In this document: positions 27,401-54,789 of the stretch, in pieces
Position numbering within the stretch: position 1 is the stretch's first letter
Layout: the number at the start of each line of letters is the position of its first letter
Assembly: GCA_002269645.1 (NCBI GenBank)
Contig: NIVC01001302.1
Location: forward strand, 1-64,000
Source: Macrostomum lignano
Taxonomy: Eukaryota
Length of the DNA: 64,000 nt
Reading direction: 5' to 3'
The notes under the pieces: model-generated
What the model saw: only the letters and a program-made list of their open reading frames with translations
Database searches by the model: none
Told to the model about the DNA's origin: nothing
Made by a program: the position numbers and the translations under genes

Positions 27401-30400
27401 CGACTTTTTGGCGCCCTGTTCCACGAAATCTCGTCGTTTTAGAGTCCTCTAGAGTCACTTCTTTCAGTTCTATTTTTTGTGTTACCTGCAACAAATCTGG
27501 GCGCGACGCTAGTGACTAAACCATTTTAGCAGGCGACTTCATAAGCTTCATAGGTTTTCAAGGTTGGGAAATTTCGAGCTTGTGAAGCGACCCCCTTAGG
27601 CCCCTAGGGACCTAGAGATTCTCTTTGCTGAACGTATTACTTCAAGTAGACTTTTAACAGCAAGATGCATGAATTTGGTTTACAGGTCGAGGAGCCAGAC
27701 GATTGGCTGAGATTCGGAAATCCGTGGGAGAAGGCCCGGCCGGAGTACCTGCTGCCGATTAGTTTCTATGGTCGCGTTGATGTCGGACCGGACGGCTCGA
27801 AGCGCTGGGTTGACGCACAGACTGTGCTGGCCATGCCGTATGATACGCCAGTGCCTGGGTGAGCTCTCGCCTTGTCAGTAGATGCAGGCCTTAGCCACCG
27901 ATATGTATCAAATAAATAGTAATTTACTGAGGCTCATAGTAGCCGATATGTATCGAATATATAGAAATTTAAATGCAGGTCATAGTAGCCGATATGTATC
28001 GAAAATATAGAAATGTAAATGCAGGTCATAGAAGCCGATATGTATCGATTAAATTGAAATGTAATTCCCTTTTAATCTGAACTTTATTGACCTTACGGTC
28101 TTGAATTTAATAAACTGCCACCCCTTATGCAGCTTTGGCAACAACAACTGCAACACGCTGCGTCTGTGGACCGCCAAAGCTCCCCAGAGCTTCAATTTGC
28201 ACTCGTTCAACTCCGGCGAGTACATCTCGGCCGTGTGCGACCGCAATCAGGCTGAGAATATCAGCAGAGTGCTCTATCCTAACGATAACTTCTTTGAGGG
28301 CAAAGAGCTGCGACTCAAGCAGGAGTACTTCCTGGTAGCGGCTACTCTGCAGGATATTATTCGAAGATTTCGCAATTCGAAATCCTACAATCATTGTTTC
28401 GATAATTTCGCCGACAAAGTAGCCATTCAGTTGAATGACACGCATCCCAGCTTAGCCATACCCGAGCTGATGCGAATCTTCATCGATCAGGAGAAGCTGG
28501 CCTGGGATGCGGCTTGGAGCATCTGCGTTGCCACGTTTGCCTATACGAATCACACCATACTGCCTGAGGCTCTGGAGCGCTGGCCTGTGCAGACTCTGGC
28601 CAAGTGCTTGCCAAGGTGAATTTTTTATTGATTTAGTTGGATTTTAAAATCTTGATGAACTGCGTGACCTCAACTTCATTGATGACCCAGAACTGCGTGA
28701 CCCATAATTCATTGAGGACTCAGAACTGTATGACCCAGAACTGCATGACTCAAAATTCATTGATGACTCAGAACTGCATGACCCAAAATTCATTGATGAC
28801 CCAGAACTGCAGGACCCATCATTCATTTTGATCCAGAACTGCATGACTCAAAATTCATTGATGACTCAGAACTGCATGACCCAAAATTCATTGATGACCC
28901 AGAGTTGTATGACCCAAACTTGATTAATGACTTAGAACTGCATGACCCAAAATTCATTGATGACCCAGAACTGCATCACCAAAAATTCATTGATGACCCA
29001 GAACTGCATGACCAAATTCATTGATGACCCAGAACTGCATGACCCAAATTTATGATGGCCCAAAACTGCTGATCCTTTAATGACTTTAGAACTGAAGAAC
29101 TGAGTGACTCGACTTTAGATGATCTAGATCATAATGGTCCGAATATTTTTGACATAATTAAATGATCTATTTATTTTTCTTTAAACGATTCTCATCATAC
29201 GCTTCAATACAACAATTAACATATTTCTTCCAGACACCTGGAGATAATTTACGACATCAATCAGCGCTTCCTGGCCTACGTATCCGAGCGGTATCCGGGC
29301 GACATGGATCGCATCAGGCGGATGAGCCTGGTTGAAGAGGACGGCTGCAAGCGCATCAACATGGCCTACCTGTGCGTGGTTGGCAGCCACGCTGTTAATG
29401 GAGTCGCCAGGTGAGATTTTTTACGGATCCTCAGTTGCTTGGCCAGCCTCCCAGATCCTCAGTTGCTGGGCCAGCCTCCCAGATTCTCAGTTGCTGGGCC
29501 AGCCTCCCAGATCCTCAGTTGCTGGGCCAGCCTTCCAGAGTGTCAGTTGCTTGGCCAGCCTCCCAGATCCCCAGTTGCTGGGCCAGCCTCCCAGATCCTC
29601 AGTTGCTGGGACAGCCTCCCAGATCCTCAGTTGCTGGGACAGCCTCCCAGATCCTCAGTTGCTGGGCCAGCCTCCCAGACCCTCAGTTGCTGGGCCAGCC
29701 TCCCAGACCCTCAGTTGCTGGGCCAGCCTCCCAGACCCTCAGTTGCTGGGCCAGCCTCCCAGATCCTCAGTTGCTGGGCCAGCCTTCCAGATCCTCAGTT
29801 GCTGGGCCAGCCTCCCAGATCCTCAGTTGCTGGGCCAGCCTCCCAGAGTGTCAGTTGCTGGGCCAGCCTCCCAGACCCTCAGTTGCTGGGCCAGCCTCCC
29901 AGATCCTCAGTTGCTGGGCCAGCCTCCCAGAGTGTCAGTTGCTGGGCCAGCCTCCCAGACCCTCAGTTGCTGGGCCAGCCTCCCAGATCCTCAGTTGCTG
30001 GGCCAGCCTCTCAGATCCTTAGTTGCTGGGCCAGCCTCCCAGATCCTGCAGTTGCTGGGCCAGCCTCCCAGATCCTCAGTTGCTGGGCCAGCCTCCCAGA
30101 CCCTCAGTTGCTGGGCCAGCCTCCCAGATCCTCAGTTGCTGGGCCAGCCTCCCAGAGTGTCGGTTGCTGGGCCAGCCTCCCAGACCCTCAGTTGCTGGGC
30201 CAGCCTCCCAGATCCTCAGTTGCTGGGCCAGCCTCTCAGATCCTTAGTTGCTGGGCCAGCCTCCCAGATCCTGTAGTTGCTGGGCCAGCCTCCCAGATCC
30301 TCAGTTTTTGACCGTCCTTGACTTTCCAGAATCCACTCCGACCTCATCAAGAAGCACGTTTTCAAGGACTTCTACGAGCTGTGGCCCGAGCGATTCCAGA

Positions 30401-33400
30401 ATAAAACCAACGGCATCACGCCTCGCCGCTGGCTGCTGCTGTGCAATCCCGGACTCAGCGACCTGCTCAGCGACAAGATCGGGCCGGCTTGGATCACCGA
30501 TCTGGACCAGCTCCGCCAGCTGACCGACTTTCAAGACAACGAGCACGTCCTGCGCGAGCTGGTCAAAGTGAAGTCCCAGGCTAAACGAAAATTTGCCGAT
30601 TTTGTAATGCGAGAATTCAAAGTGAAGATTGATCCTTCCAGTATGTTCGACATTCAGGTGAGACCGCCCACCTCCGAGCTCTTGAATTAGCGCATATTTT
30701 TCTCAAGGATGAAATCATTTCCATTTACAGAGTGACTTCACACCTGGTCATTATTAATTACAGAGTGACTTCACACCTGGTCATTGTCTAGTTGACTACA
30801 GAGTGACTTCACACCTTGTCATTATTAATTACAGAGTGACTTCACACCTGGTCATTGTCTAGTTGACTACAGAGTGACTTCACACCTTGTCATTATTAAT
30901 TACAGAGTGACTTCACACCTGGTCATTGTCTAGTTGACTACATAGTGACTTCACACCTTGTCATTATTAATTACAGAGTGACTTCACACCTTTTCATTAT
31001 TAATTACAGAGTGACTTCACACCTTGTCATTATTAATTACAGAGTGACTTCACACCTTTTCATTATTAATTACAGAGTGACTTCACACCTGGTCATTGTC
31101 TAGTTGACTACAGAGTGACTTCACACCTGGTCATTGTTTAATTACAGAGTGACTTCACACATGGTCATTGTTTAATTACAGAGTGACTTCACACCTTTTC
31201 ATTATTAATTACAGAGTGACTTCACACCTGGTCATTATTAATTACAGAGTGACTTCACACCTGGTCATTATTAATTACAGAGTGACTTCACACCTTTTCA
31301 TTATTAATTACAGAGTGACTTCACACCTGGTCATTATTAATTACAGAGTGACTTCACACCTTTTCATTATTAATTACAGAGTGAATTCACACCTTTTCAT
31401 TATTAATTACAGAGTGAATTCACACCTTTTCATTATTAATTACAGAGTGACTTCACACCTATTCATTATTAATTATAACTCCCCCAGGTAAAGCGCATTC
31501 ACGAGTACAAGCGGCAGCTGCTGAACTGTCTGCACGTGATCACCCTGTACAACCGCATCCGTGACAACCCCAAGTGCAAATTCGTGCCCAGAACGGTGAT
31601 GATCGGCGGCAAAGCTGCCCCGGGCTACCACATGGCCAAATTAATTATCAAACTAATCAACTCGGTGGCTAAAGTTATTAACAATGATCCCATTGTTGGC
31701 AATCGCCTGCGGGTGCTATTCTTAGAAAACTATCGAGTCAGCCTGGCCGAGAAAATCTTCCCAGCGGCGGACCTGTCCGAGCAGATCAGCACAGCCGGTA
31801 CGGAGGCGTCCGGCACCGGCAACATGAAGTTCATGCTCAATGGCGCCCTCACTATCGGCACAATGGACGGCGCCAATGTGGAAATGTGCGAAGAGATGGG
31901 CCGCGAGAATATGTTCGTGTTCGGCATGTCGGTTGAAGAAGTCGAAGCTTTGTCTCGCAGCGGCTACCGGCCTGCGGACCATTACGCTTCGAGCCCCGAG
32001 CTGCGCCGCTGTCTCGACATGATTCGCGACGGGGTGTTCTCGCCGCCCGACAATGCCGGCCTGTTTCGCGACGTCTTCGACAGTTTAGTGTATCACGACC
32101 GGTTCATGCTTCTGGCCGACTATAAGGATTATATTCGAGCTCAGGACCTCGCTGCTGAAACCTACTTGGTAAGGCTTGAACTACTTGATCTGATCTCTGG
32201 ATTTTTATTAGTATTCAGAATGATTTGTAGATTGGGAATATTGGGATAATTAGTAGATTATGAGATATTAGGATAATTTGTAGATTATGGAATATTGGGA
32301 TAATTTTTAGTTTATGGAATAATTTTGATTTTTATAGGTAGAGATGGGATAATTTGTAGATTATGGGATTTTAGGATGATTTGTAGATTATGGGATTTTA
32401 GGATGATTTGTAGTTTATGGGATATTGGGATAATTTGTAGTTTATGGGATAATGAGATAATTAGTAGATTATAGGATATTGGGATAATTTGTATATTATG
32501 GGATATTGGGCTAATATGTAGATTATTGGATATTGGGATAATTTGTAGAGTATGGGATATTGGGTTAATTTGTAGATTATGGGATATTGGGATAATTTGT
32601 AGTTTATGGGATATTGGGATAATTTGTAGATTATGGGATTTTAGGATGATTTGTAGATTATGGGATTTTAGGATGATTTGTAGATTATGGGATTTTAGGA
32701 TGATTTATAGATTATGGGGTATTGGGATAGTTTGTAGATAATGGGATATTGGGATACTTTGTAGATTATGGGATATTGGGATAATTTGTAGATTATTGGA
32801 TATTGGGATAATTTGTATATTATGGGATATTGGGCTAATATGTAGATGATTGGATATTGGGATAATTTGTAGATTGTGGTATATTGGGATAATTTGTAGA
32901 TTATGGGATTTTTTTGGATGATTTGTAGATTATGGGATTTTAGGATGATTTGTAGATTATGGGATTTTAGGATGATTTGTAGATTATGGGGTATTGGGAT
33001 AATTTGTATATTATGGGATATTGGGATAATTTGTATATTATGGGATATTGGGCTAATATGTAGATTATTGGATATTGGGATAATTTGTAGATTGTGGTAT
33101 ATTGGGATAATTTGTAGTTTATGGGATATTGGTATAATTTGTAGATTATGGGATATTGGGATAATTTGTAGTTTATGGGATATTGGGATAATTTGTATAT
33201 TATGGGATATTGGGCTAATATTTAGATTTTTGGATATTGGGATAATTTCTAGATTGTGGGATATTGGGATAATTTGTATACTGTGGGACATTAGGATAAT
33301 TTGTACGATTATGACATCTACAATTATATATAATCTATAATCTACGACAATCTACAATTGTAGATTAAGGGATATTTAAATAATTGTAAATTAAGGTATT

Positions 33401-36297: not shown

Positions 36298-36411
36298 TAT
36301 TTCTTTAAGTTCAAAGTATTAAAGTCGAGTTTGTTACGGCCCCTTGAGAATCGCCCTCTCATGGCATTTCATGTCCATAATTTCTGTTCATGGCAGAAAG
36401 CTAACACAGCA

Positions 36412-39400
36412 ATGAGCAAAGGCGGCAAGCACAAGCCAAAGCACAAGCACCGTCACGGTCACGGTCACAAGCAACAGAAGAAGCAAGATCTGCGGCAGCA
36501 GCAACAGCATTCTGTACAAAATCAAAGCAAAGCAAAGCATCGCAAACAGCAAAAGATGTTATTAAGGAAGATGAAATGGCAGAAACAACATCATCAAACT
36601 CGTCCTGCTGCTGCTGACATGACCGCGGATACGAATCCATTAACTACTACTAGCGCTAGTAGTATTGCCGATAACAACCCTCTTCTAGAAGAGAGGCGCA
36701 GTTTGCCAATTTGGCAGCACAGGCGCGACCTGCTGGCCTGCATCCGGCAGCACAGGTGTTTAGTTTTGATATCGTCCACCGGATCTGGCAAGAGTACCCA
36801 GGTGCCGCAGTTTCTTTTAGAAGCAGCCTCGGGCAGTAAGCAGACCCGGGTAGCTATCACTCAGCCGAGGCGCATTGCCGCCATCAGTTTGGCTCAGCGA
36901 GTGGCACTGGAGGCCAACAATGGGCCGCTTGGTTCCTTTGTTGGCTACAAGGTTTGTTTGATGCACTGGTTGTGGTTGGTTTGCTAAGGTGATGTTTCCT
37001 GCTCTCCACTCTACCCATCCACTCTACCCCTGCTTCCCATCTACTCTACCCCTGCTTCCCATCCACTCTACCCCTGTTCAATTCCACTCCACCCCTGTTC
37101 CCATCCACTCTATCCCTACTTCCCATCCACTCTATCCCTACTTCCCATCCACTCTATCCCTACTTCCCATCCACTCTACCCCTGTTCCCTTCCACTCTAC
37201 CCCTGCTTCCCATCCACTCTACCCCTGTTCCCTTCCACTCTACCCCTACTTCCCTTCCACTCTACCCCTACTTCCCATCCACTACCCCTACTTCCCTTCC
37301 ACCCTACCCCTACTTCCCTTCCACTCTACCCCTACTTCCCTTCCACTCTACCCCTGCTTTCCATCCACTCTACCCCTGTTCAATTCCACTCTACCCCTGT
37401 TCAATTCCACTCTACCCCTTTTCCCATCCACTCTACCCCTGCTCATCCACTCTACCCCTGTTCAATTCCACTCTACCCCTTTTCCCATCCACTCTACCCC
37501 TGCTCATCCACTCTACCCCTTTTCCCTTCCACTCTACCCCTGCTGCCATCCACTCTACCCTGCTACCCTTCCACTCTACCCCTGTTCCCTTCCACTCTAC
37601 CCCTACTTCCCATCCACTCTACCCCTGCTTCCCATCCACTCTACCCCTTTTCCCTTCCACTCTACCCCTGCTGCCATCCACTCTACCCCTGCTGCCATCC
37701 ACTCTACCCTGCTACCCTTCCACTCTACCCCTACTTCCCATCCACTCTACCCCTGCTTCCCATCCACTCTACCCCTGTTCCCTTCCACTCTACCCCTACT
37801 TCCCATCCACTCTACCCCTGCTTCCCATCCACTCTACCCTGCTACCCTTCCACTCTACCCCTGTTCCCTTCCACTCTACCCCTACTTCCCATCCACTCTA
37901 CCCCTGCTTCCCATCCACTCTACCCCTGTTCCCTTCCACTCTACCCCTGCTTCCCTTCCACTCTACCCCTGCTTCCCTTCCACTCTACCCCTACTTCCCT
38001 TCCACTCTACCCCTGCTTCCCTTCCACTCTACCCCTGCTTCCCTTCCACTCTACCCCTTTTCCCATCCACTCTACCCTGCTGCCATCCACTCTACCCTGC
38101 TGCCATCCGCTCTACCCCATAAATTCAGGTCCGATTCGAAGAATGCGTTAAGCCCGGCACTGCTTTGACTTTCCTGACCGATGGCATGCTGCTGCGAGAG
38201 TCCCTGCTGGATCCGCAGCTGACTCGCTACACTCACATTGTACTGGACGAAGCTCACGAGAGGAGTCTGGCCACGGATTTACTGTTTGGCGTTGTGAAAT
38301 TGGCTATGCATAAGCGGCCAGAGCTTCGGGTGGTGGTAATGTCAGCCACCTTGGATCCTGAGCCATTCTGTAGGTTCTTTCCCGGTAGCAAGCTGGTGTA
38401 TCTTACTGGTGAGTGTCTGTCTGTCTGTTGTGGGTATTGAGGTATTCTGGTAGCTTTGTGAGTAGATATTGTAGTAGCTTTGTGAGTAGATATTGTATTA
38501 GATTTGTGAGTAGATATTGTAGTGGCTTTGTGAGTAGATATTGTAGTAGCTGTGTGAGTAGATATTGTAGTAGCTTTGTGAGTAGATATTGTGGTAGCCT
38601 TGTGAGTAGATATTGCAGTAGATTTGTGAGTAGATATTGTAGTAGCTGTGTGAGTAGATATTGTAGTGCCCGTGTGAGTAGATATTGTAGTAGCTTTGTG
38701 AGTAGGTATTGTAGTGGCTTGACTTTCGACACTCTGATAGCTTAATTAGTTGTTAGCTAATTTAGTTATTATCGGTAGCTCAATTGTTTTTAATTGGTAG
38801 ATAACATGGTCGATAAATTAGTAGATAGCATGGTAGCTCAAATGGTAGATATCTTGGTAGCACAATTGGTAGTTACGAAGGTAGCTCAATCGGTAGATAC
38901 AAAGGTAGTTCAATCGGTAGATACGAAGGTAGCTCAATCGGTAGATACGAAGGTAGCTCAATCGGTAGATACGAAGGTAGCTCAATCGGTAGATACGAAG
39001 GTAGCTCAATCGGTAGATACGAAGGTAGCTCAATCGGTAGATACGAAGGTAGCTCAATCGGTAGATACGAAGGTAGCTCAATCGGTAGATACGAAGGTAG
39101 CTCAATCGGTAGATACGAAGGTAGCTCAATCGGTAGATACGAAGGTAGCTCAATCGGTAGATACGAAGGTAGCTCAATCGGTAGATACGAAGGTAGCTCA
39201 ATCGGTAGATACGAAGGTAGCTCAATCGGTAGATACGAAGGTAGCTCAATCGGTAGATACAAAGGTAGCTCAATCGGTAGATACAAAGGTAGCTCAATCG
39301 GTAGATACGAAGGTAGCTCAATCGGTAGATACGAAGGTAGCTCAATCGGTAGATACGAAGGTAGCTCAATCGGTAGATACGAAGGTAGCTCAATCGGTAG

Positions 39401-42400
39401 ATACGAAGGTAGCTCAATCGGTAGATACGAAGGTAGCTCAATCGGTAGATACGAAGGTAGCTCAATCGGTAGATACGAAGGTAGCTCAATCGGTAGATAC
39501 GAAGGTAGCTCAATCGGTAGATACGAAGGTAGCTCAATCGGTAGATACGAAGGTAGCTCAATCGGTAGATACGAAGGTAGCTCAATCGGTAGATACGAAG
39601 GTAGCTCAATCGGTAGATACAAAGGTAGCTCAATCGGTAGATACAAAGGTAGCTCAATCGGTAGATACGAAGGTAGCTCAATCGGTAGATACGAAGGTAG
39701 CTCAATCGGTAGATACGAAGGTAGCTCAATCGGTAGATACGAAGGTAGCTCAATCGGTAGATACGAAGGTAGCTCAATCGGTAGATACGAAGGTAGCTCA
39801 ATCGGTAGATACGAAGGTAGCTCAATCGGTAGATACGAAGGTAGCTCAATCGGTAGATACGAAGGTAGCTCAATCGGTAGATACGAAGGTAGCTCAATCG
39901 GTAGATACGAAGGTAGCTCAATCGGTAGATACGAAGGTAGCTCAATCGGTAGATACGAAGGTAGCTCAATCGGTAGATACGAAGGTAGCTCAATCGGTAG
40001 ATACGAAGGTAGCTCAATCGGTAGATACGAAGGTAGCTCAATCGGTAGATACGAAGGTAGCTCAATCGGTAGATACGAAGGTAGCTCAATCGGTAGATAC
40101 GAAGGTAGCTCAATCGGTAGATACGAAGGTAGCTCAATCGGTAGATACGAAGGTAGCTCAATCGGTAGATACGAAGGTAGCTCAATCGGTAGATACGAAG
40201 GTAGCTCAATCGGTAGATACGAAGGTAGCTCAATCGGTAGATACGAAGGTAGCTCAATCGGTAGATACGAAGGTAGCTCAATCGGTAGATACGAAGGTAG
40301 CTCAATCGGTAGATACGAAGGTAGCTCAATCGGTAGATACGAAGGTAGCTCAATCGGTAGATACGAAGGTAGCTCAATCGGTAGATACGAAGGTAGCTCA
40401 ATCGGTAGATACGAAGGTAGCTCAATCGGTAGATACGAAGGTAGCTCAATCGGTAGATACGAAGGTAGCTCAATCGGTAGATACGAAGGTAGCTCAATCG
40501 GTAGATACGAAGGTAGCTCAATCGGTAGATACGAAGGTAGCTCAATCGGTAGATACAAAGGTAGCTCAATCGGTAGATACAAAGGTAGCTCAATCGGTAG
40601 ATACGAAGGTAGCTCAATCGGTAGATACGAAGGTAGCTCAATCGGTAGATACGAAGGTAGCTCAATCGGTAGATACGAAGGTAGCTCAATCGGTAGATAC
40701 GAAGGTAGCTCAATCGGTAGATACGAAGGTAGCTCAATCGGTAGATACGAAGGTAGCTCAATCGGTAGATACGAAGGTAGCTCAATCGGTAGATACGAAG
40801 GTAGCTCAATCGGTAGATACGAAGGTAGCTCAATCGGTAGATACGAAGGTAGCTCAATCGGTAGATACGAAGGTAGCTCAATCGGTAGATACGAAGGTAG
40901 CTCAATCGGTAGATACGAAGGTAGCTCAATCGGTAGATACAAAGGTAGCTCAATCGGTAGATACGAAGGTAGCTCAATCGGTAGATACGAAGGTAGCTCA
41001 ATCGGTAGATACGAAGGTAGCTCAATCGGTAGATACGAAGGTAGCTCAATCGGTAGATACGAAGGTAGCTCAATCGGTAGATACGAAGGTAGCTCAATCG
41101 GTAGATACGAAGGTAGCTCAATCGGTAGATACGAAGGTAGCTCAATCGGTAGATACGAAGGTAGCTCAATCGGTAGATACGAAGGTAGCTCAATCGGTAG
41201 ATACGAAGGTAGCTCAATCGGTAGATACGAAGGTAGCTCAATCGGTAGATACGAAGGTAGCTCAATCGGTAGATACGAAGGTAGCTCAATCGGTAGATAC
41301 GAAGGTAGCTCAATCGGTAGATACGAAGGTAGCTCAATCGGTAGATACAAAGGTAGCTCAATCGGTAGATACGAAGGTAGCTCAATCGGTAGATATAAAG
41401 GTAGCTCAATCGGTAGATACAAAGGTAGTCTCATATTTCGTTTCTTCCTTGTTTTACATTTTTCACGTGAGAGTCTTACTTAAAGATTTCTTGTTCCAAT
41501 GCCTCCCCCTTCCCAGGCCGCCAGTACCCCATCGAGCTGATGTCGGTGGACCGTCCAGTCTCCGACTATGTCTCTGCCGCCCTAGTGGCCGTCCTGCAGC
41601 TGCACCGCAGTCGGCCGCTGAAACCGACGCACGACATTCTCGTGTTCCTCACCGGCGAGGATGACATCGCCGAGTTGCGGCATCTGCTGCGCCAGGCCTC
41701 TCAGGAGCTCCGCGGCAACGGCGGCCTCCTGCCGCTGCCGCTGTACGCCGCCTTGCCAGCCAGCCTGCAGTTGAAAGCGCTGGCGCCGCTGGACCAGACA
41801 GAGGGACCCGCGCGGAAAGTGAGGGCTGCTGTTGATCAGTCTGCCTGTGCCTTCCTTCCTGTCTGTGCCTTCCTGTCTGTGCCTGCCTGTCTGTGCCTGC
41901 CTGTGCCTTCCTGTCTGTGCCTTCCTGTCTGTGCCTGCCTGTGCCTTCCTGTCTGTGCCTTCCTGTGCCTTCCTGTCTGTGCCTTCCTGCCTGTGCCTTC
42001 CTGCCTGTGCCTTCCTGTCTGTGCCTGTCTGTGCCTGCCTGTCTGTGCCTTCCTGTCTGTGCCTTCCTGTCTGTGCCTGCCTGTCTGTGCCTGCCTGTGC
42101 CTTCCTGTCTGTGCCTTCCTGTGCCTTCCTGTCTGTGCCTTCCTGTCTGTGCCTTCCTGTGCCTTCCTGTCTGTGCCTTCCTGCCTGTGCCTTCCTGTCT
42201 GTGCCTGTCTGTGCCTGCCTGTCTGTGCCTTCCTGTCTGTGCCTTCCTGTCTGTGCCTTCCTGTCTGTGCCTGCCTGTGCCTTCCTGTCTGTGCCTTCCT
42301 GTGCCTTCCTGTCTGTGCCTTCCTGCCTGTGCCTTCCTGCCTGTGCCTTCCTGCCTGTGCCTTCCTGTCTGTGCCTGTCTGTGCCTGCCTGTCTGTGCCT

Positions 42401-45400
42401 TCCTGTCTGTGCCTTCCTGTCTGGTATGTGCGTTTCTGTCTGTGCCTTCCTGTCTGTGCGTTTCTGTCTGTGCGTTTCTGTCTGTGCCTTCCTGTCTGTG
42501 CGTTTCTGTCTGTGCGTTTCTGTCTGTGCCTTCCTGTCTGTGCGTTTCTGTCTGTGCGTTTCTGTCTGTGCCTTCCTGTCTGTGCGTTTCTGTCTGTGCG
42601 TTTCTGTCTGTGCCTTCCTGTCTGTGCCTTCCTGTCTGTCTGTGTGCCTCTCCGCTCCTACCATTCCAGTATTAAGTTCCTCTCCCCCACCCGCCCCAGG
42701 TGATCCTAGCAACCAATCTGGCCGAGTCCTCCCTAACGATACCCGGAGTTCGCTGTGTAGTGGACTGCGGCCGCGCCAAGGTCCGCTCCGCCCCCACCTC
42801 GGCCGCGGGCTCCTGGATCGAGCGGCTGTCGGTGGAGCGCATCAGCCAGGCTCAGGCCTGGCAGCGGGCCGGCCGGGCAGCCCGTCAGGCCCCCGGCTGC
42901 TGCCACCGGCTGTACACCAACGCCGAGCTGCTGGAGCAGATGCCCGAACAGCCGGTGCCGGAGCTGCTCAGAGCCAGCCTGGGCACCGCACTGCTCAGCC
43001 TATTAGGCGTTGGAGCCAAGCAGCCGGCTGAGTTTCCTTTGTTAGATCCGCTGCCGCCAGCTGGCGTGTCTGCCGGTCTGGCCATGCTGAAACAGCTGGG
43101 CGCGGCCGAGCTGACTACTACTGTTAGTAGTAGCCTTAATAGTGGCTGGAGATTGACGCCAATTGGCAAGGATATGCTGGCGTTGCCGCTGGAGCCGCGA
43201 ATGGCCCGGGTGCTGCTGGAGGCGGCCAAGCCCCAGCTGAGCTGTCTGGCTGAGGTAACTAGCTAGCATGGATGGGGGGTCAGATTGCTGAGATTTGGGG
43301 TGGTGGGGGTCAGATTGCTGAGATTTGGGATGGGAGGGGTCAGATTGCTGAGATTTGGGATGGGAGGGGTCAGATTGCTGTGATTTGGGATGGGAGGGGT
43401 CAGATTGCTGAGATTTGGGATGGGAGGGGTCAGATTGCTGAGATTTGGGATGGGAGGGGTCAGATTGCTGAGATTTGGGGTGGGAGGGGTCAGATTGCTG
43501 AGATTTGGGGTGGGAGGGGTCAGATTGCTGAGATTGGGAGGGGTCAGATTGCTGAGACTTGGGATGGGAGGGGTCAGATTGCTGAGACTTGGGATGGGAG
43601 GGGTCAGATTGCTGAGATTTGGGGTGGGAGGGGTCAGATTGCTGAGACTTAGGGTGGGAGGGGTCAGATTGCTGAGATTTGGGGTGGGAGGGGTCAGATT
43701 GCTGAGACTTGGGATGGGAGGGGTCAGATTGCTGAGATTTGGGGTGGGAGGGGTCAGATTGCTGAGATTTGGGATGGGAGGGGTCAGATTGCTGAGACTT
43801 GGGGTGGGAGGGGTCAGATCGCTGAGACTTAGGGTGGGAGGGGTCAGATTGCTGAGATTTGGGGTGGGAGGGGTCAGATTGCTGAGACTTGGGGTGGGAG
43901 GGGTCAGATCGCTGAGACTTGGGATGGGAGGGGTCAGATTGCTGAGATTTGGGGTGGGAGGGGTCAGATTGCTGAGATTTGGGGTGGGAGGGGTCAGATT
44001 GCTGAGATTTGGGGTGGGAGGGGTCAGATTGCTGAGATTTGGGGTGGGAGGGGTCAGATTGCTGAGATTTGGGATGGGAGGGGTCAGATTGCTGAGATTT
44101 GGGATGGGAGGGGTCAGATTGCTGAGATTTGGGGTGGGAGGGGTCAGATTGCTGAGATTTGGGGTGGGAGGGGTCAGATTGCTGAGATTTGGGGTGGGAG
44201 GGGTCAGATTGCTGAGATTTGGGGTGGGAGGGGTCAGATTGCTGAGATTTGGGGTGGGAGGGGTCAGATTGCTGAGATTTGGGGTGGGAGGGGTCAGATT
44301 GCTGAGATTTGGGGTGGGAGGGGTCAGATTGCTGAGATTTGGGTGGGAGGGGTCAGATTGCTGAGATTTGGGGTGGGAGGGGTCAGATTGCTGAGATTTG
44401 GGGTGGGAGGGGTCAGATTGCTGAGATTTGGGGTGGGAGGGGTCAGATTGCTGAGATTTGGGGTGGGAGGGGTCAGATTGCTGAGATTTCTATGTTAGAT
44501 AAACGAATTCAGAGATATATTTCTATGTTAGATAAACGAATTCAGAGATATAAGATGCTGAGATAAATTTTGTGCACGAGGTTGCTGATACCTCAAAGAG
44601 TCAAATGATAATTATGTTGCACATTTCGGCCATGATTCTCAGTGACCATCATTCCAGTTGCCAACTGTTAATTGACCCCTCTCCCGCCAGGTAATCAAGA
44701 TCGTCTCCCTCCTATCGGTGGACCATCTGTTCTACGTGCCGCCGAATCGCCGGGAAGCCGCCCAGGCCGCCTGGCAGCCGTACGAATCTTCGCACGGCGA
44801 TCTGTTCTTCCTGCTGAACCTCTTCAACGCGTTCCAGGGCCTGACGGACCCGGCTGAGAAGGCGCGATGGTTGAAACGGCATTTTATCTCCCTGAGAGCC
44901 TTGACTACCTGTCTGCAGGTGTGGCTTAACAACTGTTCTACTAGCTAGGAAGGCGTGCCTCTCTGTTCTTGACTTTTGGGAGGAGAGTGACTCTCGGTGT
45001 GACTATGGAAGTATAGTGATTCTCAGGTGTGAGTTTGGAAGTAGAGTGACTCTCTGGTGTGAATTTAACAGTATAGTGACTCTCGGGTGTGACTTTAAGA
45101 GTAGAGTGACTCTCAGGTGTGACTTAGGAAGTAGAGTGACTCTCAGGTGTGACTTAGGGAGTAGAGTGACTCTCAGGTGTGACTTAGGGAGTAGAGTGAC
45201 TCTCAGGTGTGACTTAGGGAGTAGAGTGACTCTCAGGTGTGACTTAGGGAGTAGAGTGACTCTCCATATGACTTTTTGGGAGTAGAGCGACTTTCGGTGT
45301 GACTTTGAAAGTAGAATGGCTCTCAGATATGACTTTGGAAGAAGAGGGACTCTCGGGTGTGACTTTAGAAGTAGAGTGACTTTGGGGTGACTTTGGGAGT

Positions 45401-46681: not shown

Positions 46682-47850
46682 TACCCCACTCTAGATGCCA
46701 ATGATGGCCACATCTATACCCCACTCTAGATGCCAATAATGGCCACATCTATACCCCTCTCTAGATGCCAATAATGGCCACATCTATACCCCACTCTAGA
46801 TGCCAATAATTGCCACATCTATACCCCTCTCTAGATGCCAATAATGGCCACATCTATACCCCTCTCTAGATGCCAATAATGGCCACATCTATACCCCACT
46901 CTAGATGCCAATAATTGCCACATCTATACCCCACTCTAGATTCCAATAATGGCCACATCTATACCCCACTCTAGATGCCAATAATGGCCACATCTATACC
47001 CCACTCTAGATGCCAATAATGGCCACATCTATACCCCACTCTAGATGCCAATAATGGCCACATCTATACCCCACTCTAGATGCCAATAATGGCCACATCT
47101 ATACCCCACTCTAGATGCCAATAATGGCCACATCTATACCCCACTCTAGATGCCAATAATGGCCGCATCTATACCCCACTCTAGATGCCAATAATGGCCA
47201 CATCTATACCCCACTCTAGATGCCAATAATGGCCACATCTATACCCCACTCTAGATGCCAATAATGGCCACATCTATACCCCACTCTAGATGCCAATGAT
47301 GGCCACATCTATACCCCACTCTAGATGCCAATAATGGCCACATCTATACCCCACTCTAGATGCCAATGATGGCCGCATCAATACCCCACTCTAGATGCCA
47401 ATAATGGCTGCATCTATACCCCACTCTAGATGCCAATGATTGCCACATCAATACCCCACTCTAGATGCCAATAATGGCCACATCTATACCCCACTCTAGA
47501 TGCCAATGATGGCCACATCTATACCCCACTCTAGATGCCAATAATGGCCACATCTATACCCCACTCTAGATGCCAATGATGGCCGCATCAATACCCCACT
47601 CTAGATGCCAATGATGGCCGCATCAATACCCCACTCTAGATGCCAATAATGGCTGCATCTATACCCCACTCTAGATGTCAATAATGGCCACATCTATACC
47701 CCACTCTAGATGCCAATGATGGCCGCATCAATACCCCACTCTAGATGCCAATAATGGCCACATCTATACCCCACTCTAGATGCCAATTATGGCCACATCT
47801 ATACCCCACTCTAGATGCCAATAATGGCCACATCTATACCCCACTCTAGA
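46682..47850. repeat. 35-bp minisatellite (CCACATCTATACCCCACTCTAGATGCCAATAATGG)n
   Basis: About 33 copies between the convergent DHX33 and Tau-like 3' ends. Confidence 0.97.
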
Positions 47851-47972
47851 TGCCAATAAAGGCCACATCTACTCGTACACCCATCACTGAAGATGTCAAT
47901 AAAGTTTTACAAATCTTGAAACGTCAGTCTGAAGAAGTGCATGCAAACTCGCACAAAGTCGCGGCTGGCCAT

Positions 47973-50763
47973 CTACTTTTGCTCGCTTCTTTCGTTGTCG
48001 AGCTGACGCGGCTTGGTCGCTGCGGGGCTGCTCTTTGCCTCGCCTCGGTACCGCTGGTCGTATTCTCGCTGCCGCTGCCGCATGGCTGCTCCCGCGGCCG
48101 CCGTCCGCTGCTGCTGTCTCGGCGATTCCGAACCGTTGGTTGGTGCTGGTTGCTGCTCCTGCTGCTGAGGCTTGTCCTTGATCGCGTCAGACTGTTGCGA
48201 GACCAGCCGGAGTCTGGGTCGGTTACTTTCAACCTCCAGCCATGGCAGGCGCTCGTGGTACACCTGCGGCGGTGTCCGGACATGTGCAGGAGAGCTTCTG
48301 GGAGCCTGGTCCCTACTGACTCGCCTGACATACCACTGGCTCACCTGACAAACCACTGTATCACCTGACATACCACTGGCTCACCTGACATACCACTGTA
48401 TCACCTGACATACCACTGGCTCACCTGACAAACCACTGTATCACCTGACATACCACTGGCTCACCTGACATACCACTGTATCACCTGACATGCCACTGGC
48501 TCACCTGACATACCACTGTATTACCTGACATACCACTGTATTACCTGACATGCCACTGGCTCACCTGACATACCACTGTATTACCTGACATGCCACTGGC
48601 TCACCTGACATACCACTGTATTACCTGACATGCCACTGGCTCACCTGACATACCACTGTATCACCTGACATACCACTGTATTACCTGACATGCCACTGGC
48701 TCACCTGACATACCACTGTATTACCTGACATGCCACTGGCTCACCTGACACCCATTGGCTCACCTGAGACCCAAGTGACTCGCCTGACCCAGTGGCTCAC
48801 CTGACATACCACTGTATTACCTGACATGCCACTGGCTCACCTGACATACCACTGTATCACCTGACATACCACTGTATTACCTGACATGCCACTGGCTCAC
48901 CTGACATACCACTGTATTACCTGACATACCACTGGCTCACCTGACATACCACTGTATTACCTGACATGCCACTGGCTCACCTGACACCCATTGGCTCACC
49001 TGAGACCCAAGTGACTCGCCTGACCCAGTGACTCGCCTGACATACCACTGTATTACCTGACATATCACTGGCTCACCTGACATCCCACTGGCTCACCTGT
49101 CAGAAAAATACACTCGTGAACGCTTTCAATGTGTCACGTCTTGTATGGTTGTGAGTATACTTAAGCCATAGGTGGCACCAGTGACCTACCACCTAACCAA
49201 ACTGAACTCATTAATATGATCTGCAATTACCTTAATCTCGTTCCGCTTCGGCTCGTAGTCTTTGTTCTCCATCGTGTTTAACCTCGGCGTGGCCTTCTCC
49301 GAGAAATTCACACGTTCTTTGAAGATCTAAAAGAAATTGTGTCATTTCTGTCAGAGTTTTGCTTTTCAAAATTTCCAGCCGCGTGGTATTTTAGCGTTAC
49401 TAAAAGTACTATATAGTAGATATATATACTATAAAATTATGTATGAATATGGCTATGTGAGCTTTTTATAAGCGATTAATGTGCAGATGCCAGCTGAATT
49501 GAAGTCGACCGCTGGGTATAAAAGGACGCGGTGAACTTCAAAACCACAATATCTTTGTAGTACTTTAGACGACCTCGCGGGCAACGAATATTCTGTTAGC
49601 GTGGCAATTCAAGCTACGATATGAGCTGGCAGGCGGCATATTGAGATATGAGCCTGTGGCCGGAAATTAAGGAGCATGCATTTGTCGTATCTCTTGTACT
49701 TTTACTCGGATTATGCTATGGAGAACGCACAGCGCTGCATGGGGTTTTGCCATAGACTAATTCGGTCTATTAAAATTTCTATTCCGATCCTAACCTACTT
49801 GTAAATGTACCTCCTCCCTACCCTACCCTGACTACCTACCATGCCCACCCTACCCTCCCTACATACGAGTACATGTACCATGCCCTACCCTACTTACCCT
49901 ACCTACCATACATTCCCTACCCTACCTACCTTCCCTACCTTATCTATTCCCTACCCTACCTACCATACCTTCCCTACCTACCCTGTCCTACCCTCCATAC
50001 CTACCCTGCCCTACCCTACCCTCCCTACCTACTACGCCCTACCCTAGCCTATTCTACTTTCCCCAACACTACCCTCCATACCCTACCCTACTCTCCCTAC
50101 CCTACCTTACTCTACCATCCCTACCCTTGCCTACTCCCCCAAACACTACCCTCCCTACTCTACCCTACTCTATCCTCCAAACACTACCTCCCTACCCTAA
50201 CCTCCCTACCCTAGTCTAACCCTACCCCACCCTAGTCTAACCCTATCCCTACCCTAGTCTTACCCTGTCCCTATACCCTTACCCTTACTTAAACCCTTGT
50301 AGTTTTAATCGACATTCAAAATAGAAAAATCAAATTGCGTGTTAAAAACGGAAAAATTCTTATCCGTTGTTTTACTAAATAATCGGGCGTGTTACAACCA
50401 GCGCCCTTTGTTTGCACTCGACTGAGCGATGTGATTCATATATATATTAATTATTCTCACCCTGACTTTAGACGTTTTTGGCCGGTAATTAATATTTTCT
50501 CGGGTATTGATTGCGGGCAGATTTGTCCACCGAAGTCTTTGGTGGTAAATGCACTGTGACAATTCGTGTGTAGCTCGTGTATGCAGTTTAGTACTTACAT
50601 GTATATAAATATCATGCTAACTGTTATGCCCTAACTGAGAACACGTAGGGATTGCTAATCTATTCTTCCGATTGTTGTGCTTCACTGAGGAAACTGAGAT
50701 TTCATTTTACTTATTGACTTAACAGATTAGCATTGTGCATGTAAATGTACGGGTCTGATGTAG

Positions 50764-50852
<89 letters not shown>

Positions 50853-50895
50853 TTCTGTCTGTCTTTCTGTCTGTCTGTCTGTCTGTCTGTCTTGG

Positions 50896-50952
<57 letters not shown>

Positions 50953-52574
50953 TAGTGTCTGTCTGTCTGTCTGTCTTAGTGTCTGTCTGTCTGTCTGTCT
51001 TAGTGTCTGTCTGTCAGTCAGTCTTAGTGTCTGTCTGCCTGTCTGTCTGTCTGTCTGTCTGTCTGTCTCAGAGGGGGCTTAACACTATTCTAACTGAATT
51101 AGAAGGTCACCTGAACCTGCGGACCCACACGTGCATGAAGTCTAAAGTGCAGCGCTAATCTTGTTCACTGCAAATTCAGCTAAGTGAGGAAGTCATAAAG
51201 AATAATTCTCTAATTAATTAATTAATAATGCACTTTTCTGTCGCCTCCGCTTGGTCTGTGCCGCAAATTCTCAAGCGACCCGATCCGCGAAGTCACGCTC
51301 CAGGTGAACCGCTGTTGGAACACCTGATGCAGATTAATAATTAGTGCTGGCTGTTAGTGAGAAAAAATATTTTGAATTGCAAATATAGTTCTGTGCCTTT
51401 AGTTAGCCATGCAAACTGTTAAACTTTCAGTTGAGCTTCAAACAGTTAACGCAACTACTGTTAATCTGAAGGACAGATTGTGTGTATTAAACAATTGAAA
51501 AACAACAAAGCTGTAAGACTGAACCTTCTTGGTTCCTCCGCCTGGTTGGTAGTCCTTGTTACTCATGGTTTCCACCTTTGGCTTGGCGTTCTTGGAAAAG
51601 TCCAACTTCTCTTTGAATATCTTTCGGTTACCGCCGCCTATTAATAATTTTGAGAGATGGTTTTTCTCTGAAATAGTCTGGAAAGTGCCTGGGTTAATAA
51701 ATCTTCTATCAGCGCACTTACTGGGCTTGTATTCCTGATTGAGCGTGTCGACCTTTGGTGGAATTTCCTTTCCTTGTTCAGCTTGCCCTGCGGTGTCGGG
51801 TGAAAAAGTTTAAAATTGTTATATACCACCTCACCCACCACCCCATTGACCTCACTCTTCACACCATTTATTTCACCCACCACCCCACTGATGTCACCCA
51901 CCACCCCACTGACTTCACCCACCACCCCATTGACTTTTACACCCACCAACCACTGACTTCACCCACCACCCCATTGACTTCTACATCCACCACCCACTGA
52001 CTTCACCCACCACCCCACTGACTTCACCCACCACCCCACTGACTTCACCCACCACCCCACTGACTTCACCCACCACCCCACTGACTTCACCCACCACCCC
52101 ATTGACTTCATCCACCACCCCACTGACTTCACCCACCACCCCATTGACTTCACTCTTCACACCATTTATTTCACCCACCAACCAACTGACTTCACCCACC
52201 ACCCCACTGACTTCACCCACCACCCCACAGACTTCACCCACCACCCCACTGGCTTCACTCACCACCCCACAGACTTCATCCACCACCCCACAGACTTCAC
52301 CCACCACCCCACTGGCTTCACTCACCACCCCACAGACTTCATCCACCACCCCACTGACTTCTACCCACCACCCCACTGACTTCATCCACCACCCCACTGA
52401 CTTCACCCACCACCCCACTGACTTCACCCACCACCCCACTGACTCACAGTCAGGCGGCAGCCCAATGCGTTTCCTCTGCCTGCTGACATCATTGGCGCCG
52501 CCTCCGCCGCCTCCGCCGCCTCCGCCACCTCCGCCGCCTCCGCCACCGTCGTTTCTCTGTTCAGTTGAGGCCAT
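47973..52574 (-). CDS. Tau/MAP2/MAP4-family microtubule-binding repeat protein (291 aa)
   Basis: Exons (minus) 52574-52448, 51787-51722, 51637-51525, 51323-51234, 50553-50461, 49326-49231, 48263-47973 join in frame. One canonical-like repeat ([21 protein letters not shown]) and four divergent ones (e.g. [21 protein letters not shown]). Start context GCCATGG. Confidence 0.8.
48330..49097. repeat. 20-bp minisatellite (CTCACCTGACATACCACTG[G/T])n
   Basis: Last intron of the Tau-like gene. Confidence 0.95.
49815..50290. repeat. Degenerate (CCTAC)n low-complexity repeat
   Basis: Tau-like intron 5. Confidence 0.88.
50765..51068. repeat. (GTCT)n microsatellite
   Basis: Tau-like intron 4. Confidence 0.96.
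51830..52447. repeat. 21-bp minisatellite (CACCCCACTGACTTCACCCAC)n
   Basis: Tau-like intron 1, starting at the donor. Confidence 0.94.
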
Positions 52575-53230
52575 GGCTCCCTACCAAAGCAGTGCAAACT
52601 TCTATTGAGTGCAGCTCTGATTGCAACACGATATTATTAGCTCTGCTAATGAGCTGTATGCAGCACAGAAACAGCTCGAAACTTATAATACCGCCCGAAT
52701 AGCGGTACTGGGCTTTTGTGCAGAGCAAGAAGAAAAAAAGCACCTGAGAACGGAGTGAAGACCAGTTTTTTTGAGATGAAGCACTATAGAGACATTATTT
52801 AAAAAGCCTGTGCTGGCCTTGTCTGTGTACAATTGTGCTTAGTGATGCTGCGTACACACTGGACTGCCTCTCTATCCGAGCAAGAGTAAAACTGATGCTC
52901 TATACTTGTGAGAAAGATTTTGAAACGGAGAAGGAGAGGCAGAGCGAGGCACCATGGCGACAGGTGCTCTTTCTTTTACCTTTCGAGTCTGTCTTACCTG
53001 CCTGTAGCCACTCTGCCTGTTGCAGTCTGTTAATAAAAGTGTGTGCGGTCCTTCAATGTTAAAAAGAAACAGAAGCCAACTCAATGCGCTGTTAAGTGGC
53101 TCGGAATTGTTGTAAATACATCATAAAAGTTATTAATTGAAGTTTACTATAGAATTTAATGCCGTAGTTGCTACTGGTAGATAACCGCGTCAGTAGTATG
53201 ATGGATTTTTAGCTTAAAGTAAGAAAGTTA

Positions 53231-54175
<945 letters not shown>

Positions 54176-54789
54176 ATGTATCTACACTGTCTGTCTATCT
54201 ATCTACATGTATCTACACTGTCTGTCTATCTATCTACATGTATCTACACTGTCTGTCTATCTATCTTCATGTATTACAAAATGCACTTTCTAAACCACTA
54301 TTGCACTTTAGTTAGAGCCATAAACGCACTCTAAACCATGGTCAGTATCAATCCTAACTGGTATTCTGCGAATTTCTTCACTAGATTTACTGTTTCGAGG
54401 GCCTACTCGCACAGGAGCTGACTGAACCGATAAGATTAATGGCAAGCATGTCAAGTGGAAGTTTCCGTGCTCCCATGACTAGCTTTATAATAAATGCTTT
54501 ATTAAGCTAAGGAATGCAATGGGGACTGGGCTGCATGCAGCACGATAGTGTGGAGTCTGCACTTTACTGTGAATATTACAAATTGTAAATTATTTAGTTA
54601 TCACCGTAGCTGCATATTTCGAACTCCAACACACGAATCTGTCAGTGTCAAGAGTCATACGACCCAGCCTCCTCTACACTGCCTCCCCTCTGTTTAAAAG
54701 TACATTGATTTAGATTTATGACCCACTAATGACCATGACAAGCACTGCTGTCTGCAGATCATCCACACCAGGTTGTAGGTCATAGAGAT

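Follow-up and report, generated by a model that had tools for sequence, protein, structure and literature searches.

A long projection domain is typical of the vertebrate proteins Tau, MAP2, and MAP4 but does not define the family. The introns of the family also have typical positions. A phase-1 intron interrupts PGGG at its first Gly codon, an exon of 113 nt ends after GGG-x-K-K, and the repeats are separated by phase-0 introns; the human exons are 82, 113, and 93 nt long. In C. elegans, alternative splicing of PTL-1 varies the number of repeats. Teleost MAPT has 5-7 repeats, and in these genes a repeat exon flanked by phase-0 introns has been duplicated (PMC4815063). The non-vertebrate MAPs form a separate clade (PMC4815063). 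Among flatworms, the planarian proteins Smed-MAPT-L1, -L2, and -L3 were described by Magley and Rouhana in 2019 (PMC6743461). It is already on record that flatworms can have more than one tau-like gene and that repeat exons with phase-0 borders can be duplicated.

The window analyzed here is a 64,000-nucleotide stretch of Macrostomum lignano DNA. As read from its sequence, the locus between 52574 and 47973 is a genuine gene of seven exons, intact throughout, that encodes a small protein of the tau/MAP2 type; it is an unusually diverged member of a known family. When the seven minus-strand exons are joined from the window sequence, every intron is GT-AG, all twelve splice dinucleotides are present, and the resulting coding sequence of 876 nt encodes 291 amino acids with zero internal stops. 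The ATG at 52574 has a good start context (G at -3 and G at +4), and the stop codon ends at 47973. M. lignano also carries a paralogue, BOX15_Mlig015027g2 (GenBank PAA69194.1, contig NIVC01001342.1), whose exons are referred to below as p1, p2, and so on. The features of the locus are as follows.

52575..52743, minus strand: 5' UTR part of exon 1; the UniProt models P0001 and P0003 start at 52743 and are contiguous to the ATG.
52448..52574, minus strand: coding part of exon 1, 127 nt; MASTEQRND, 17 Gly, 16 more amino acids, and the first base of a Trp codon.
51722..51787, minus strand: exon 2, 66 nt; core of repeat R1 after its opening Trp.
51525..51637, minus strand: exon 3, 113 nt; tail of R1 (GGNRK) and the 32-aa repeat R2; its counterpart is p4.
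51324..51350, minus strand: two candidate acceptors, 21 and 27 nt ahead of exon 4, that appear in models P0002 and P0003.
51234..51323, minus strand: exon 4 (e4), 90 nt, phase 0-0; R3, 30 aa, the sole KXGS-type repeat.
50461..50553, minus strand: exon 5 (e5), 93 nt, phase 0-0; R4, 31 aa, with neither KXGS nor PGGG.
49231..49326, minus strand: exon 6 (e6), 96 nt, phase 0-0; R5, 32 aa, with Thr at the KXGS Ser and without PGGG.
47973..48263, minus strand: exon 7, 291 nt including the TAG; a cap motif (18 aa), then a basic Q/R-rich tail.

The coordinates, the 90-, 93-, and 96-nt sizes, and the phase 0-0 borders originally predicted for e4, e5, and e6 are all exact. The repeats are carried by short symmetric exons as claimed, and the six peptide strings given with that claim are all present exactly. 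The coding sequence upstream of e4 amounts to 306 nt. Exon 1 ends in a phase-1 donor (ACT|gtgagt) whose position is conserved in p1, and its RIGLP(P/A)DW motif is also found there. Exon 2 likewise ends in phase 1, within the Ser codon of P-S-G-G. Human MAPT exon 11 is 82 nt and exon 12 is 113 nt, the latter being the length of exon 3 here. The likeness presumably extends to the borders of exon 3, which starts in phase 1 in the first codon after the Pro of P-G-G-G and ends after G-G-x-K-K. The donor of exon 3 (gttcag) is weak, and that of e4 (gtgcat) is both weak and non-consensus. The acceptors 21 and 27 nt upstream of e4 would insert (P)ALIINLHQ and are unlikely to be used, because the paralogue exon begins at the same GTGTTC. 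A branch-point-like CACTAAC, a tentative assignment, lies 29 nt upstream of the e4 acceptor at 51323.

Membership in the Tau/MAP family, as originally assigned, agrees with the profile of the tubulin-binding repeat (Pfam PF00418, gathering threshold 27 bits), against which the whole protein scores 74.9 bits (E 4.3e-21), much more than chance would give. R2 and R3 exceed this cut-off by themselves (31.5 and 36.0 bits, respectively), and single-repeat scans give nothing above the reporting level for R1, R4, and R5. The solved structure in the PDB that the protein matches best covers the repeat region of human tau (E 7e-21). The five repeat units are consecutive, are 27-32 aa each, and resemble one another with pairwise z-scores of up to 14.7. 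R5 matches an HMM built from R2 and R3 with an E of 8.5e-11. Against an HMM from R2, R3, and R5, R1 scores 20.4 bits and R4 14.6 bits, and 0 of 2000 shuffles reach either value. No further stretch scores for repeats in the six frames of the rest of the window. An exhaustive phmmer search, for which the query was the older model P0001 in place of the spliced 291-aa protein, returned 375 relatives. Those looked up by name include a sea-urchin MAP2-like protein, a Lingula tau, and the Opisthorchis 'Tau and MAP protein'. An alignment that mixed older models with window exons placed R2 over R3, and no profile was taken from it. The predicted protein has a pI of 10.19 and a GRAVY of -1.40 as computed from its sequence, and it is very basic, strongly hydrophilic, and probably disordered.

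The protein lacks a long N-terminal projection domain. Only 43 aa precede the Trp that opens the repeat region, and the paralogue has just 20 aa ahead of its first repeat. The near absence of a projection domain had been noted from the start and is upheld by a TAG in frame at 52583-52581, 9 nt upstream of the ATG, by the contiguous 5' UTR, and by the equally short paralogue. The same in-frame TAG, together with the contiguous 5' UTR in the older models, rules out an upstream coding exon. Among the relatives, 32 of 121 also begin their repeats within 60 aa, and a short N-terminus in tau-like proteins is already known. An AG at 52745-52744 directly precedes the 5' UTR and may be a cis- or trans-splice acceptor, or merely the place where the evidence begins. 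Trans-splicing affects 38.8% of M. lignano genes (PMC5730564).

Directly after the last repeat, the protein has the motif (F/Y)-x-E-x-L-P-W-L ... N-(K/R)-P-x-L. Its beginning had been described as a partial sixth repeat, 'R6', but 280 of 2000 shuffles reach the score of that segment. On sequence grounds, 'R6' is instead a conserved C-terminal cap motif of flatworm type (ERLPWL..NRPRL). The form E-x-LPWLKYN(K/A)PN(L/I) is present in 15 of the 134 relatives examined, with one further relative, from a fungus, having EKLPW only. The three full-motif relatives looked up by name are from Opisthorchis, Schistocephalus, and Dibothriocephalus. Exon 7 and p8 agree at 18 of their first 22 aa, with a pN of 0.10.

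The paralogue shares the overall plan of this gene. It has a short N-terminus with R-x-RIGLP-x-DW, a phase-1 first donor, repeat exons of 113, 90, 93, and 96 nt with identical boundaries, R4 and R5 counterparts without PGGG, and a 16-aa stretch of the cap. It differs in that amino acid identity between the copies is only ~50% and synonymous sites are saturated. One extra canonical repeat (KIKS/PGGG) and a long Q/E/K/R-rich C-terminal extension are found only in the paralogue, which also has Ser in its R2 and R5 counterparts and no poly-Gly tract. The two 90-nt exons e4 and p5 have the same borders and 16 of 30 aa identical (pN 0.32, pS 0.74). The two 93-nt exons e5 and p6 also share their borders, have 18 of 31 aa identical with a pN of 0.26 and saturated synonymous sites, and are flanked by introns whose identity is at the random level. 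The 96-nt e6 corresponds to the 96-nt p7, which reads KVRS and lacks PGGG. From copy to copy, pS is 0.58-1.02, pN is 0.10-0.36, and the flanking introns are ~25% identical; the pN/pS values average over both lineages and would also be compatible with this copy having lost its function recently. The saturation of synonymous sites alongside low nonsynonymous divergence (R4 is weakest, at 18/31) indicates that R4 and R5 are old and conserved and are not decaying.

R2 and R5 do resemble each other as claimed (16 of 32 aa identical, 71% at the nucleotide level), and the R-x-x-W start of R3, R4, and 'R6' is readable in the sequence itself. The exon-pair duplication drawn from these likenesses does not follow. 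The repeat types are in the order F-W-W-F-W, similarity at the DNA level is confined to R2 and R5, and the paralogue has a counterpart for each of R3, R4, and R5. Since these counterparts occupy the same positions in an ancient paralogue, the repeat array is older than the gene duplication.

The position of the KXGS motif reads KVDT in R1, KVET in R2, RIGS in R3, AINT in R4, and RLNT in R5. K/R-x-G-S is therefore found in R3 only, which bears out the original observation that most repeats lack KXGS. Four of the five repeats have Thr in place of the Ser. Among 554 repeats from relatives, 88% have Ser here and 0.7% have Thr. Because the paralogue keeps Ser in its R2 and R5 counterparts, the change to Thr in those two repeats is specific to this copy. 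The acidic or amide residue beside the Thr, at the position of a conserved Gly, could weaken the tubulin contact. The repeats end in PSGG (R1), PGGG (R2), PSGG (R3), PKTS (R4), and PKRN (R5), with xGG present in 90% of the same 554 repeats. The absence of PGGG from R4 and R5 is thus as originally described, but it is no recent divergence, since the paralogue shares it as a conserved ancestral state.

These motif losses could be taken as signs of a degenerating duplicate from which a repeat, the C-terminal extension, and most KXGS and PGGG motifs disappeared once the genes had duplicated, and which is on its way to becoming a pseudogene or no longer binds microtubules. At every position that can be compared, the PF00418 scores are below those of the paralogue (36.0 versus 46.2 bits for R3; below reporting versus 18.7 bits for R5), Thr at the Ser position is rare in the family, and no product is found in GenBank-derived protein sets. 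Against this, the frame, the seven exons, the splice dinucleotides, and the start context are intact, the older models contain transcript-derived UTRs, and the odd features of R4 and R5 are common to the paralogue and conserved. The frameshift in the deposited assembly sits in the paralogue, not in this copy; the 1-nt shortfall there, which concerns p4 and the start of p8, may be an error of the assembly. We regard degeneration as very unlikely. The same substitutions might instead mark a specialized MAP, possibly of the germline or sperm, whose Thr-type repeats are read by another kinase or by none, so that microtubule binding would escape MARK/PAR-1-type control; this would be the rewired phospho-control suggested originally. 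The replacement of K-x-G-S by x-(D/E/N)-T in four of five repeats and the restriction of the R2 and R5 Thr to this copy are in keeping with such an escape, and two of three planarian MAP2/Tau-like genes are enriched in the testis (PMC6743461). However, a Thr remains open to phosphorylation, relaxed constraint could explain the pattern just as well, and RNAi of the planarian genes gave no testis phenotype (PMC6743461); we consider this specialization unlikely.

The gene is not hidden, as had been supposed, since five UniProt models already map to it. All five are frameshifted or incomplete, and one is named 'Microtubule-associated protein'. Segment by segment, the M. lignano UniProt models match the window almost exactly, and they include its 5' and 3' UTRs; these older models were predicted, with many frameshifts, from paralogous or allelic loci of an assembly that is rich in errors. 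The exact product of the 291-aa gene model was not found in public (GenBank-derived) protein sets. Exact-sequence look-up of ten in-frame isoform products returned none in the collection, and the products of P0001, P0002, and P0003 had no exact match among the contigs of the collection. The identifier of the paralogue was not found in the supplement of the M. lignano germline/neoblast expression paper.

Cassette splicing of the repeat exons is plausible. R3, R4, and R5 each lie on a phase 0-0 exon. Leaving out any one of these exons therefore alters the number of repeats without shifting the frame, and all ten skip combinations tried keep open frames. The deposited PAA69194.1 equals p1+p2+p3+p4+p6 exactly, meaning that the 90-nt p5 is skipped and p6 is included. 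In P0001, e3 is joined directly to e6 at an exact junction and e4 is absent. P0002 and P0003 join e4 directly to e6, and across the five older models e5 is missing from all and e6 is present in all. The combinatorial splicing that was originally proposed has indirect support in the paralogue model that skips its 90-nt exon and in the omission of e4 and/or e5 from older models. It is possible, and we think somewhat doubtful, that the gene and protein are as described here, that splicing is constitutive with all seven exons included, and that the omissions in public models are annotation artefacts. The older models come frameshift-ridden from an error-rich assembly, so their exon omissions may indeed be artefacts; P0002 and P0003 differ in the acceptor by which the frame is rescued, a single paralogue isoform is deposited and is itself frameshifted, and all exons are under purifying selection. 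Constitutive splicing accounts less readily for the exact p4-to-p6 junction of the paralogue, which comes from a StringTie/TACO assembly of the RNA-seq data on which the M. lignano annotation was built (PMC5730564), for the exact e3/e6 junction of P0001, and for the non-consensus donors of the R3-type exon in both copies (GTGCAT here, GTACAC in the paralogue). The best cassette candidate is e4, given its weak donor in both copies, the skip in the paralogue model, and its absence from one older model.

Taken as a whole, the locus is probably best explained as a transcribed Tau/MAP2/MAP4 gene with five repeats that binds microtubules by homology, has an ancient paralogue, and carries R3 as a candidate cassette. 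The predicted protein consists of a 43-aa N-terminus (poly-Gly and RIGLPPDW), five repeats, the cap, and a short basic tail. By homology, it would lie along microtubule protofilaments and stabilize or bundle them, with one tubulin interface per repeat. M. lignano has two or more ancient paralogues with a common exon plan, including the conserved non-PGGG R4 and R5. From this copy, one canonical repeat and the long C-terminal extension would have disappeared. The change from G-S to (D/E/N)-T in R2 and R5 of this copy would have left R3 as its only canonical KXGS repeat. Regulated inclusion of e4 would then be analogous to that of MAPT exon 10. A more speculative and improbable extension is that R4 ('xNT...Y-x-P-K/S') and R5 may be a distinct subtype of tubulin-binding repeat, known to date only from the two Macrostomum paralogues and with its own lattice contact, with R3 as an optional cassette and splicing as a switch between a kinase-releasable and a Thr-type form. 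If true, the Thr-type form would be constitutively bound or regulated differently, and the form with R3 would be kinase-releasable.

The locus opens no new category of gene or mechanism. It does provide a clean, complete model of a flatworm tau-like gene where public sets hold frameshifted fragments and wrong names. Its tau-type repeats without both hallmark motifs have been kept for a very long time by purifying selection, which bears on which repeat residues microtubule binding truly needs. The pair of Ser-type and Thr-type paralogues would be a convenient natural experiment on KXGS-dependent regulation in M. lignano, which is transgenic-ready and RNAi-capable.

With vertebrate MAPT, MAP2, and MAP4, this gene shares the PF00418 repeats, the placement of one repeat per exon, and a symmetric 93-nt exon. 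In its one-repeat exons, the cut falls two codons after that of MAPT exon 10. Compared with vertebrate tau, the protein of 291 aa has no projection or proline-rich domain, has KXGS in one repeat, lacks PGGG in two, and has a Trp-containing inter-repeat and an LPWL cap. The tau-like proteins of planarians, flukes, and tapeworms likewise have three, four, or more repeats, with several paralogues in a genome, and the E-x-LPWL..N(K/R)P cap is shared with the 'Tau and MAP protein' genes of flukes and tapeworms. The fluke and tapeworm proteins that were read differ in that almost every repeat has K-x-(G/N)-S and PGGG. PTL-1 and teleost MAPT also differ from the M. lignano protein, having canonical KXGS/PGGG repeats and longer N-terminal regions.

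The gene in this region is a true, though derived, Tau/MAP2/MAP4 family member and belongs to the flatworm subgroup. When the minus strand of 47500-53000 was read and the segments named in the original prediction were joined, seven exons gave a stop-free coding sequence of 876 nt (291 aa), with GT at the start and AG at the end of every intron.

Exons of the window gene and the tubulin-binding repeats (R1-R5) that they carry
52574-52448, minus strand: exon 1 (e1)
51787-51722, minus strand: exon 2 (e2), most of R1
51637-51525, minus strand: exon 3 (e3), R2
51323-51234, minus strand: exon 4 (e4), R3, 90 nt, phase 0-0
50553-50461, minus strand: exon 5 (e5), R4, 93 nt, phase 0-0
49326-49231, minus strand: exon 6 (e6), R5, 96 nt, phase 0-0
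48263-47973, minus strand: exon 7 (e7), cap motif

The sizes and phases of e4, e5 and e6 are exactly as predicted, the phases because e1, e2 and e3 sum to 306 nt, and all the peptides quoted for R1 to R6 are found in the joined translation. An in-frame TAG 9 nt 5' of the ATG rules out a coding exon upstream of e1. Only 43 aa precede the Trp that opens the repeat region, in agreement with the claim of almost no projection domain. The protein is basic and strongly hydrophilic (pI 10.2, GRAVY -1.40), as expected for a disordered lattice-binding MAP. A (GGC/GGA/GGT) run at 52496-52548 encodes 17 Gly in the window, against 8 in the UniProt models of this gene, and is absent from the paralogue described below; probably the trinucleotide repeat varies in length, or the older assembly collapsed it.

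Against the Pfam profile PF00418 ('Tau and MAP protein, tubulin-binding repeat'; cut-off 27 bits), the whole protein scores 74.9 bits (E 4.3e-21), and its top solved-structure matches are human tau repeat regions (E 7e-21). The proposed divergent MAP is therefore borne out as to family, and microtubule binding would be expected from this homology. When each repeat is scanned by itself, R2 (31.5 bits) and R3 (36.0 bits) exceed the cut-off; R1, R4 and R5 fall below it. A six-frame scan of the whole window (2286 open fragments) with an HMM of R2 and R3 alone finds R5 in e6 (E 8.5e-11), followed by R4 in e5 (E 0.11, improving to 0.02 once R5 joins the HMM). Against the R2+R3+R5 HMM, R4 scores 14.6 bits and R1 20.4 bits, values reached by 0/2000 shuffles, and the six-frame scan found no further tau-like repeats elsewhere in the 64 kb window. 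The partial sixth repeat, R6, is rejected as a repeat, its score being equalled by 280/2000 shuffles. What opens R6 is instead a conserved cap, which reads [15 protein letters not shown] in the window; in 15/134 relatives x-E-x-LPWLKYN(K/A)PN(L/I) closes the repeat array. One further relative of the 134, a fungal protein, has EKLPW only, and the three full-cap relatives looked up by name are all flukes or tapeworms.

An exhaustive HMMER search with P0001, an older UniProt model of the window gene, gave 375 relatives. Among them is PAA69194.1 (BOX15_Mlig015027g2), a 124-aa M. lignano protein whose locus lies on Mlig_3_7 contig NIVC01001342.1 (L002). The paralogue has the same gene plan, with all introns GT-AG and exon boundaries as in the window.

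Exons of the paralogue (a slash marks an exon boundary)
p1, 61 nt: same RIGLP-x-D/W phase-1 donor; counterpart of e1
p2, 77 nt: R1; counterpart of e2 (in part)
p3, 79 nt: extra canonical repeat (KIKS/PGGG motifs); no window counterpart
p4, 112 nt, L002:5735-5846: R2 counterpart; e3
p5, 90 nt: R3 counterpart; e4
p6, 93 nt: R4 counterpart; e5
p7, 96 nt: R5 counterpart; e6
p8, long: [18 protein letters not shown]..., then a long extension; counterpart of e7

Between the two genes, synonymous differences are saturated (pS 0.58-1.02) and nonsynonymous differences low (pN 0.10-0.36), with a dN/dS of about 0.09 over 495 nt. Flanking intron sequence, 60 nt to each side of the exons, shows random identity (14-23/60). 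In e5 and p6, 18/31 residues are identical and every synonymous site has changed. R4 is therefore a genuine coding exon that selection has maintained since an ancient duplication. Both copies share the R4 peculiarities (A-(I/L)-N-T-R-E-N-I-x-Y, no PGGG), and both lack PGGG in the R5 region (EPKRNEIK in the window, EPRRPGIR in the paralogue); these states are ancestral. The paralogue retains Ser in its R2 (KIGS) and R5 (KVRS) counterparts and scores 32.9 (partial repeat), 46.2 and 18.7 bits against PF00418 at the R2, R3 and R5 positions, versus 31.5, 36.0 and below reporting for the window, so that the window gene is the more derived copy. Compared with the paralogue, the window gene is without the p3 repeat and the long Q/E/K/R-rich C-terminal extension. 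Because p4 is one base short of the 113 nt of e3, PAA69194.1 runs out of frame and stops at 124 aa. The frame changes again within p8 (L002:8998-9130), where a conserved RERQREF..AAT..NER motif is in frame +2. These changes are either Mlig_3_7 assembly indel errors or real lesions.

The predicted likeness of R2 to R5 was confirmed, as they are the closest repeat pair (16/32 aa, z 14.7, 71% nt), followed by R3-R4 (z 9.0) and R4-R5 (z 8.1). Simple exon-pair duplication, which had been suggested from such likeness, does not agree with the F-W-W-F-W order of repeat types or with an array that is older than the paralogue split. The T-M signature common to R2 and R5 could be old intragenic conversion or parallel change.

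The gene had been called hidden, but five UniProt models map there and one is already named 'Microtubule-associated protein'. A word-indexed protein search gave these five entries (P0001-P0005), all from Macrostomum lignano, which in tblastn are near-identical to the window by segment, with many frameshifts and differing exon content. P0001 has e1, e2, e3, e6 and e7, P0002 and P0003 join e4 directly to e6, and P0004 and P0005 pass from e2 to e6; e5 is missing from all five. P0001 and P0003 open with translated 5'UTR that matches the window without a break from 52743, the base that follows an AG, and P0005 extends into the 3'UTR; the gene is therefore transcribed and known to annotators. The exact products of ten possible in-frame isoforms were absent among about 15 billion proteins, and the correct product is not in existing protein sets. 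The UniRef names of P0001 (A0A1I8IZ88, 'Methylcytosine dioxygenase TET') and P0003 (A0A1I8JRC6, 'Microtubule-binding protein TANGLED') are evidently mis-transferred. At 52743-52745, two independent older models begin exactly after an AG preceded by ccgttctcag; either spliced-leader trans-splicing may use this acceptor, or a 5'UTR intron may end there. Trans-splicing occurs in 38.8% of M. lignano genes (PMC5730564).

PAA69194.1 is the exact translation of p1+p2+p3+p4+p6, using the predicted exon boundaries, with the R4-type exon in and the 90-nt R3-type exon out. StringTie and TACO assemblies of RNA-seq, together with a de novo transcriptome, underlie the Mlig_3_7 annotation (PMC5730564), so the p4-p6 junction comes from reads. 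In both genes the donor of the R3-type exon departs from the consensus (GTGCAT in the window, GTACAC in the paralogue), and P0001 has an exact e3/e6 junction without e4 and e5. Taken together, these observations make in-frame skipping of window repeat exons plausible, above all of e4. Acceptors 21 and 27 nt upstream of e4, used in P0002 and P0003 and adding ALIINLHQ, find no support in the paralogue, where the exon starts at the same GTGTTC.

The motifs were surveyed in 554 repeats from 134 relatives, anchored on N-x-x-(H/Y)-x-P. At the KXGS Ser position, 88% of repeats have Ser and 0.7% have Thr; the residue before it is Gly in 75%, and Pro is followed by x-G-G in 90%. As predicted, the window repeats are mostly non-KXGS: Thr replaces Ser in 4/5, thus a rare state for the family, and R3 in e4 is the only KXGS repeat. 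The rewired phospho-control proposed on this basis is a hypothesis. Non-PGGG repeats are a known minority, examples being a MAP2-like protein of a nemertean and some short unnamed proteins whose inter-repeats are of the Trp type. The short N-terminus is not unusual; among 121 relatives, repeats start within 60 residues in 32, and 37 are at most 300 aa, though some models may be partial. PF00418-type repeat proteins were also matched by HMMER in the chytrids Irineochytrium and Dinochytrium, in Bifiguratus and in the ichthyosporean Creolimax (P0011, P0044, P0036 and P0033), so the family of repeats extends beyond animals.

In the tau-like gene, each of the four introns above 650 nt contains a minisatellite or microsatellite, as do the 3'UTR flank and the region upstream. 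This agrees with a reported 15% of simple and tandem repeats in M. lignano.

Repeat tracts and neighbouring genes
47000-47871, 48315-49099, 49813-50273, 50764-51068, 51831-52444, 53233-54290: repeat tracts (units of 35, 20, 5 to 14, 4 and 21 bp; about 1 kb of (GATA)n)
28101-32249, plus strand: glycogen phosphorylase exons (PF00343, 244 and 314 bits); one intron carries a proline-rich minisatellite at about 29.3-30.3 kb
36331-43266, plus strand: helicase gene, DEAH-type by eye, Helicase_C at 42700-43266, convergent with the tau-like gene; an intronic tandem array of about 2.9 kb (38.8-41.7 kb), open in several frames, gives spurious ORFs of about 850-960 aa

Overall, the gene is a well-defined additional member of a known family; the observation of the gene is confirmed and its interpretation partly supported. 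The rare feature is its Thr-type repeats, and the useful evolutionary finding is the conservation of non-PGGG repeats over a long time.

In human MAPT, exons 10, 11 and 12 measure 93, 82 and 113 nt; the junction of exons 11 and 12 interrupts the first Gly codon of PGGG in phase 1, and PGGGNKK closes exon 12. Window e3 matches MAPT exon 12 in its 113 nt, its phase-1 start (P-S/GG) and its end (GGGTKK/), and the paralogue p2/p3 boundary (PGGGS/RKIF) is at the position of the exon 10/11 boundary. For e4 to e6, which carry one repeat each, the boundaries are of the exon 12/13 type and fall two codons after the position seen in MAPT exon 10. This likeness may serve as a lead. More than one tau-like paralogue in a flatworm genome has been reported before: Schmidtea has three, two of them testis-enriched and without an RNAi phenotype (PMC6743461). 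Non-vertebrate MAPs are known to group in a separate clade, and in teleosts repeat exons flanked by phase-0 introns have been duplicated (PMC4815063).
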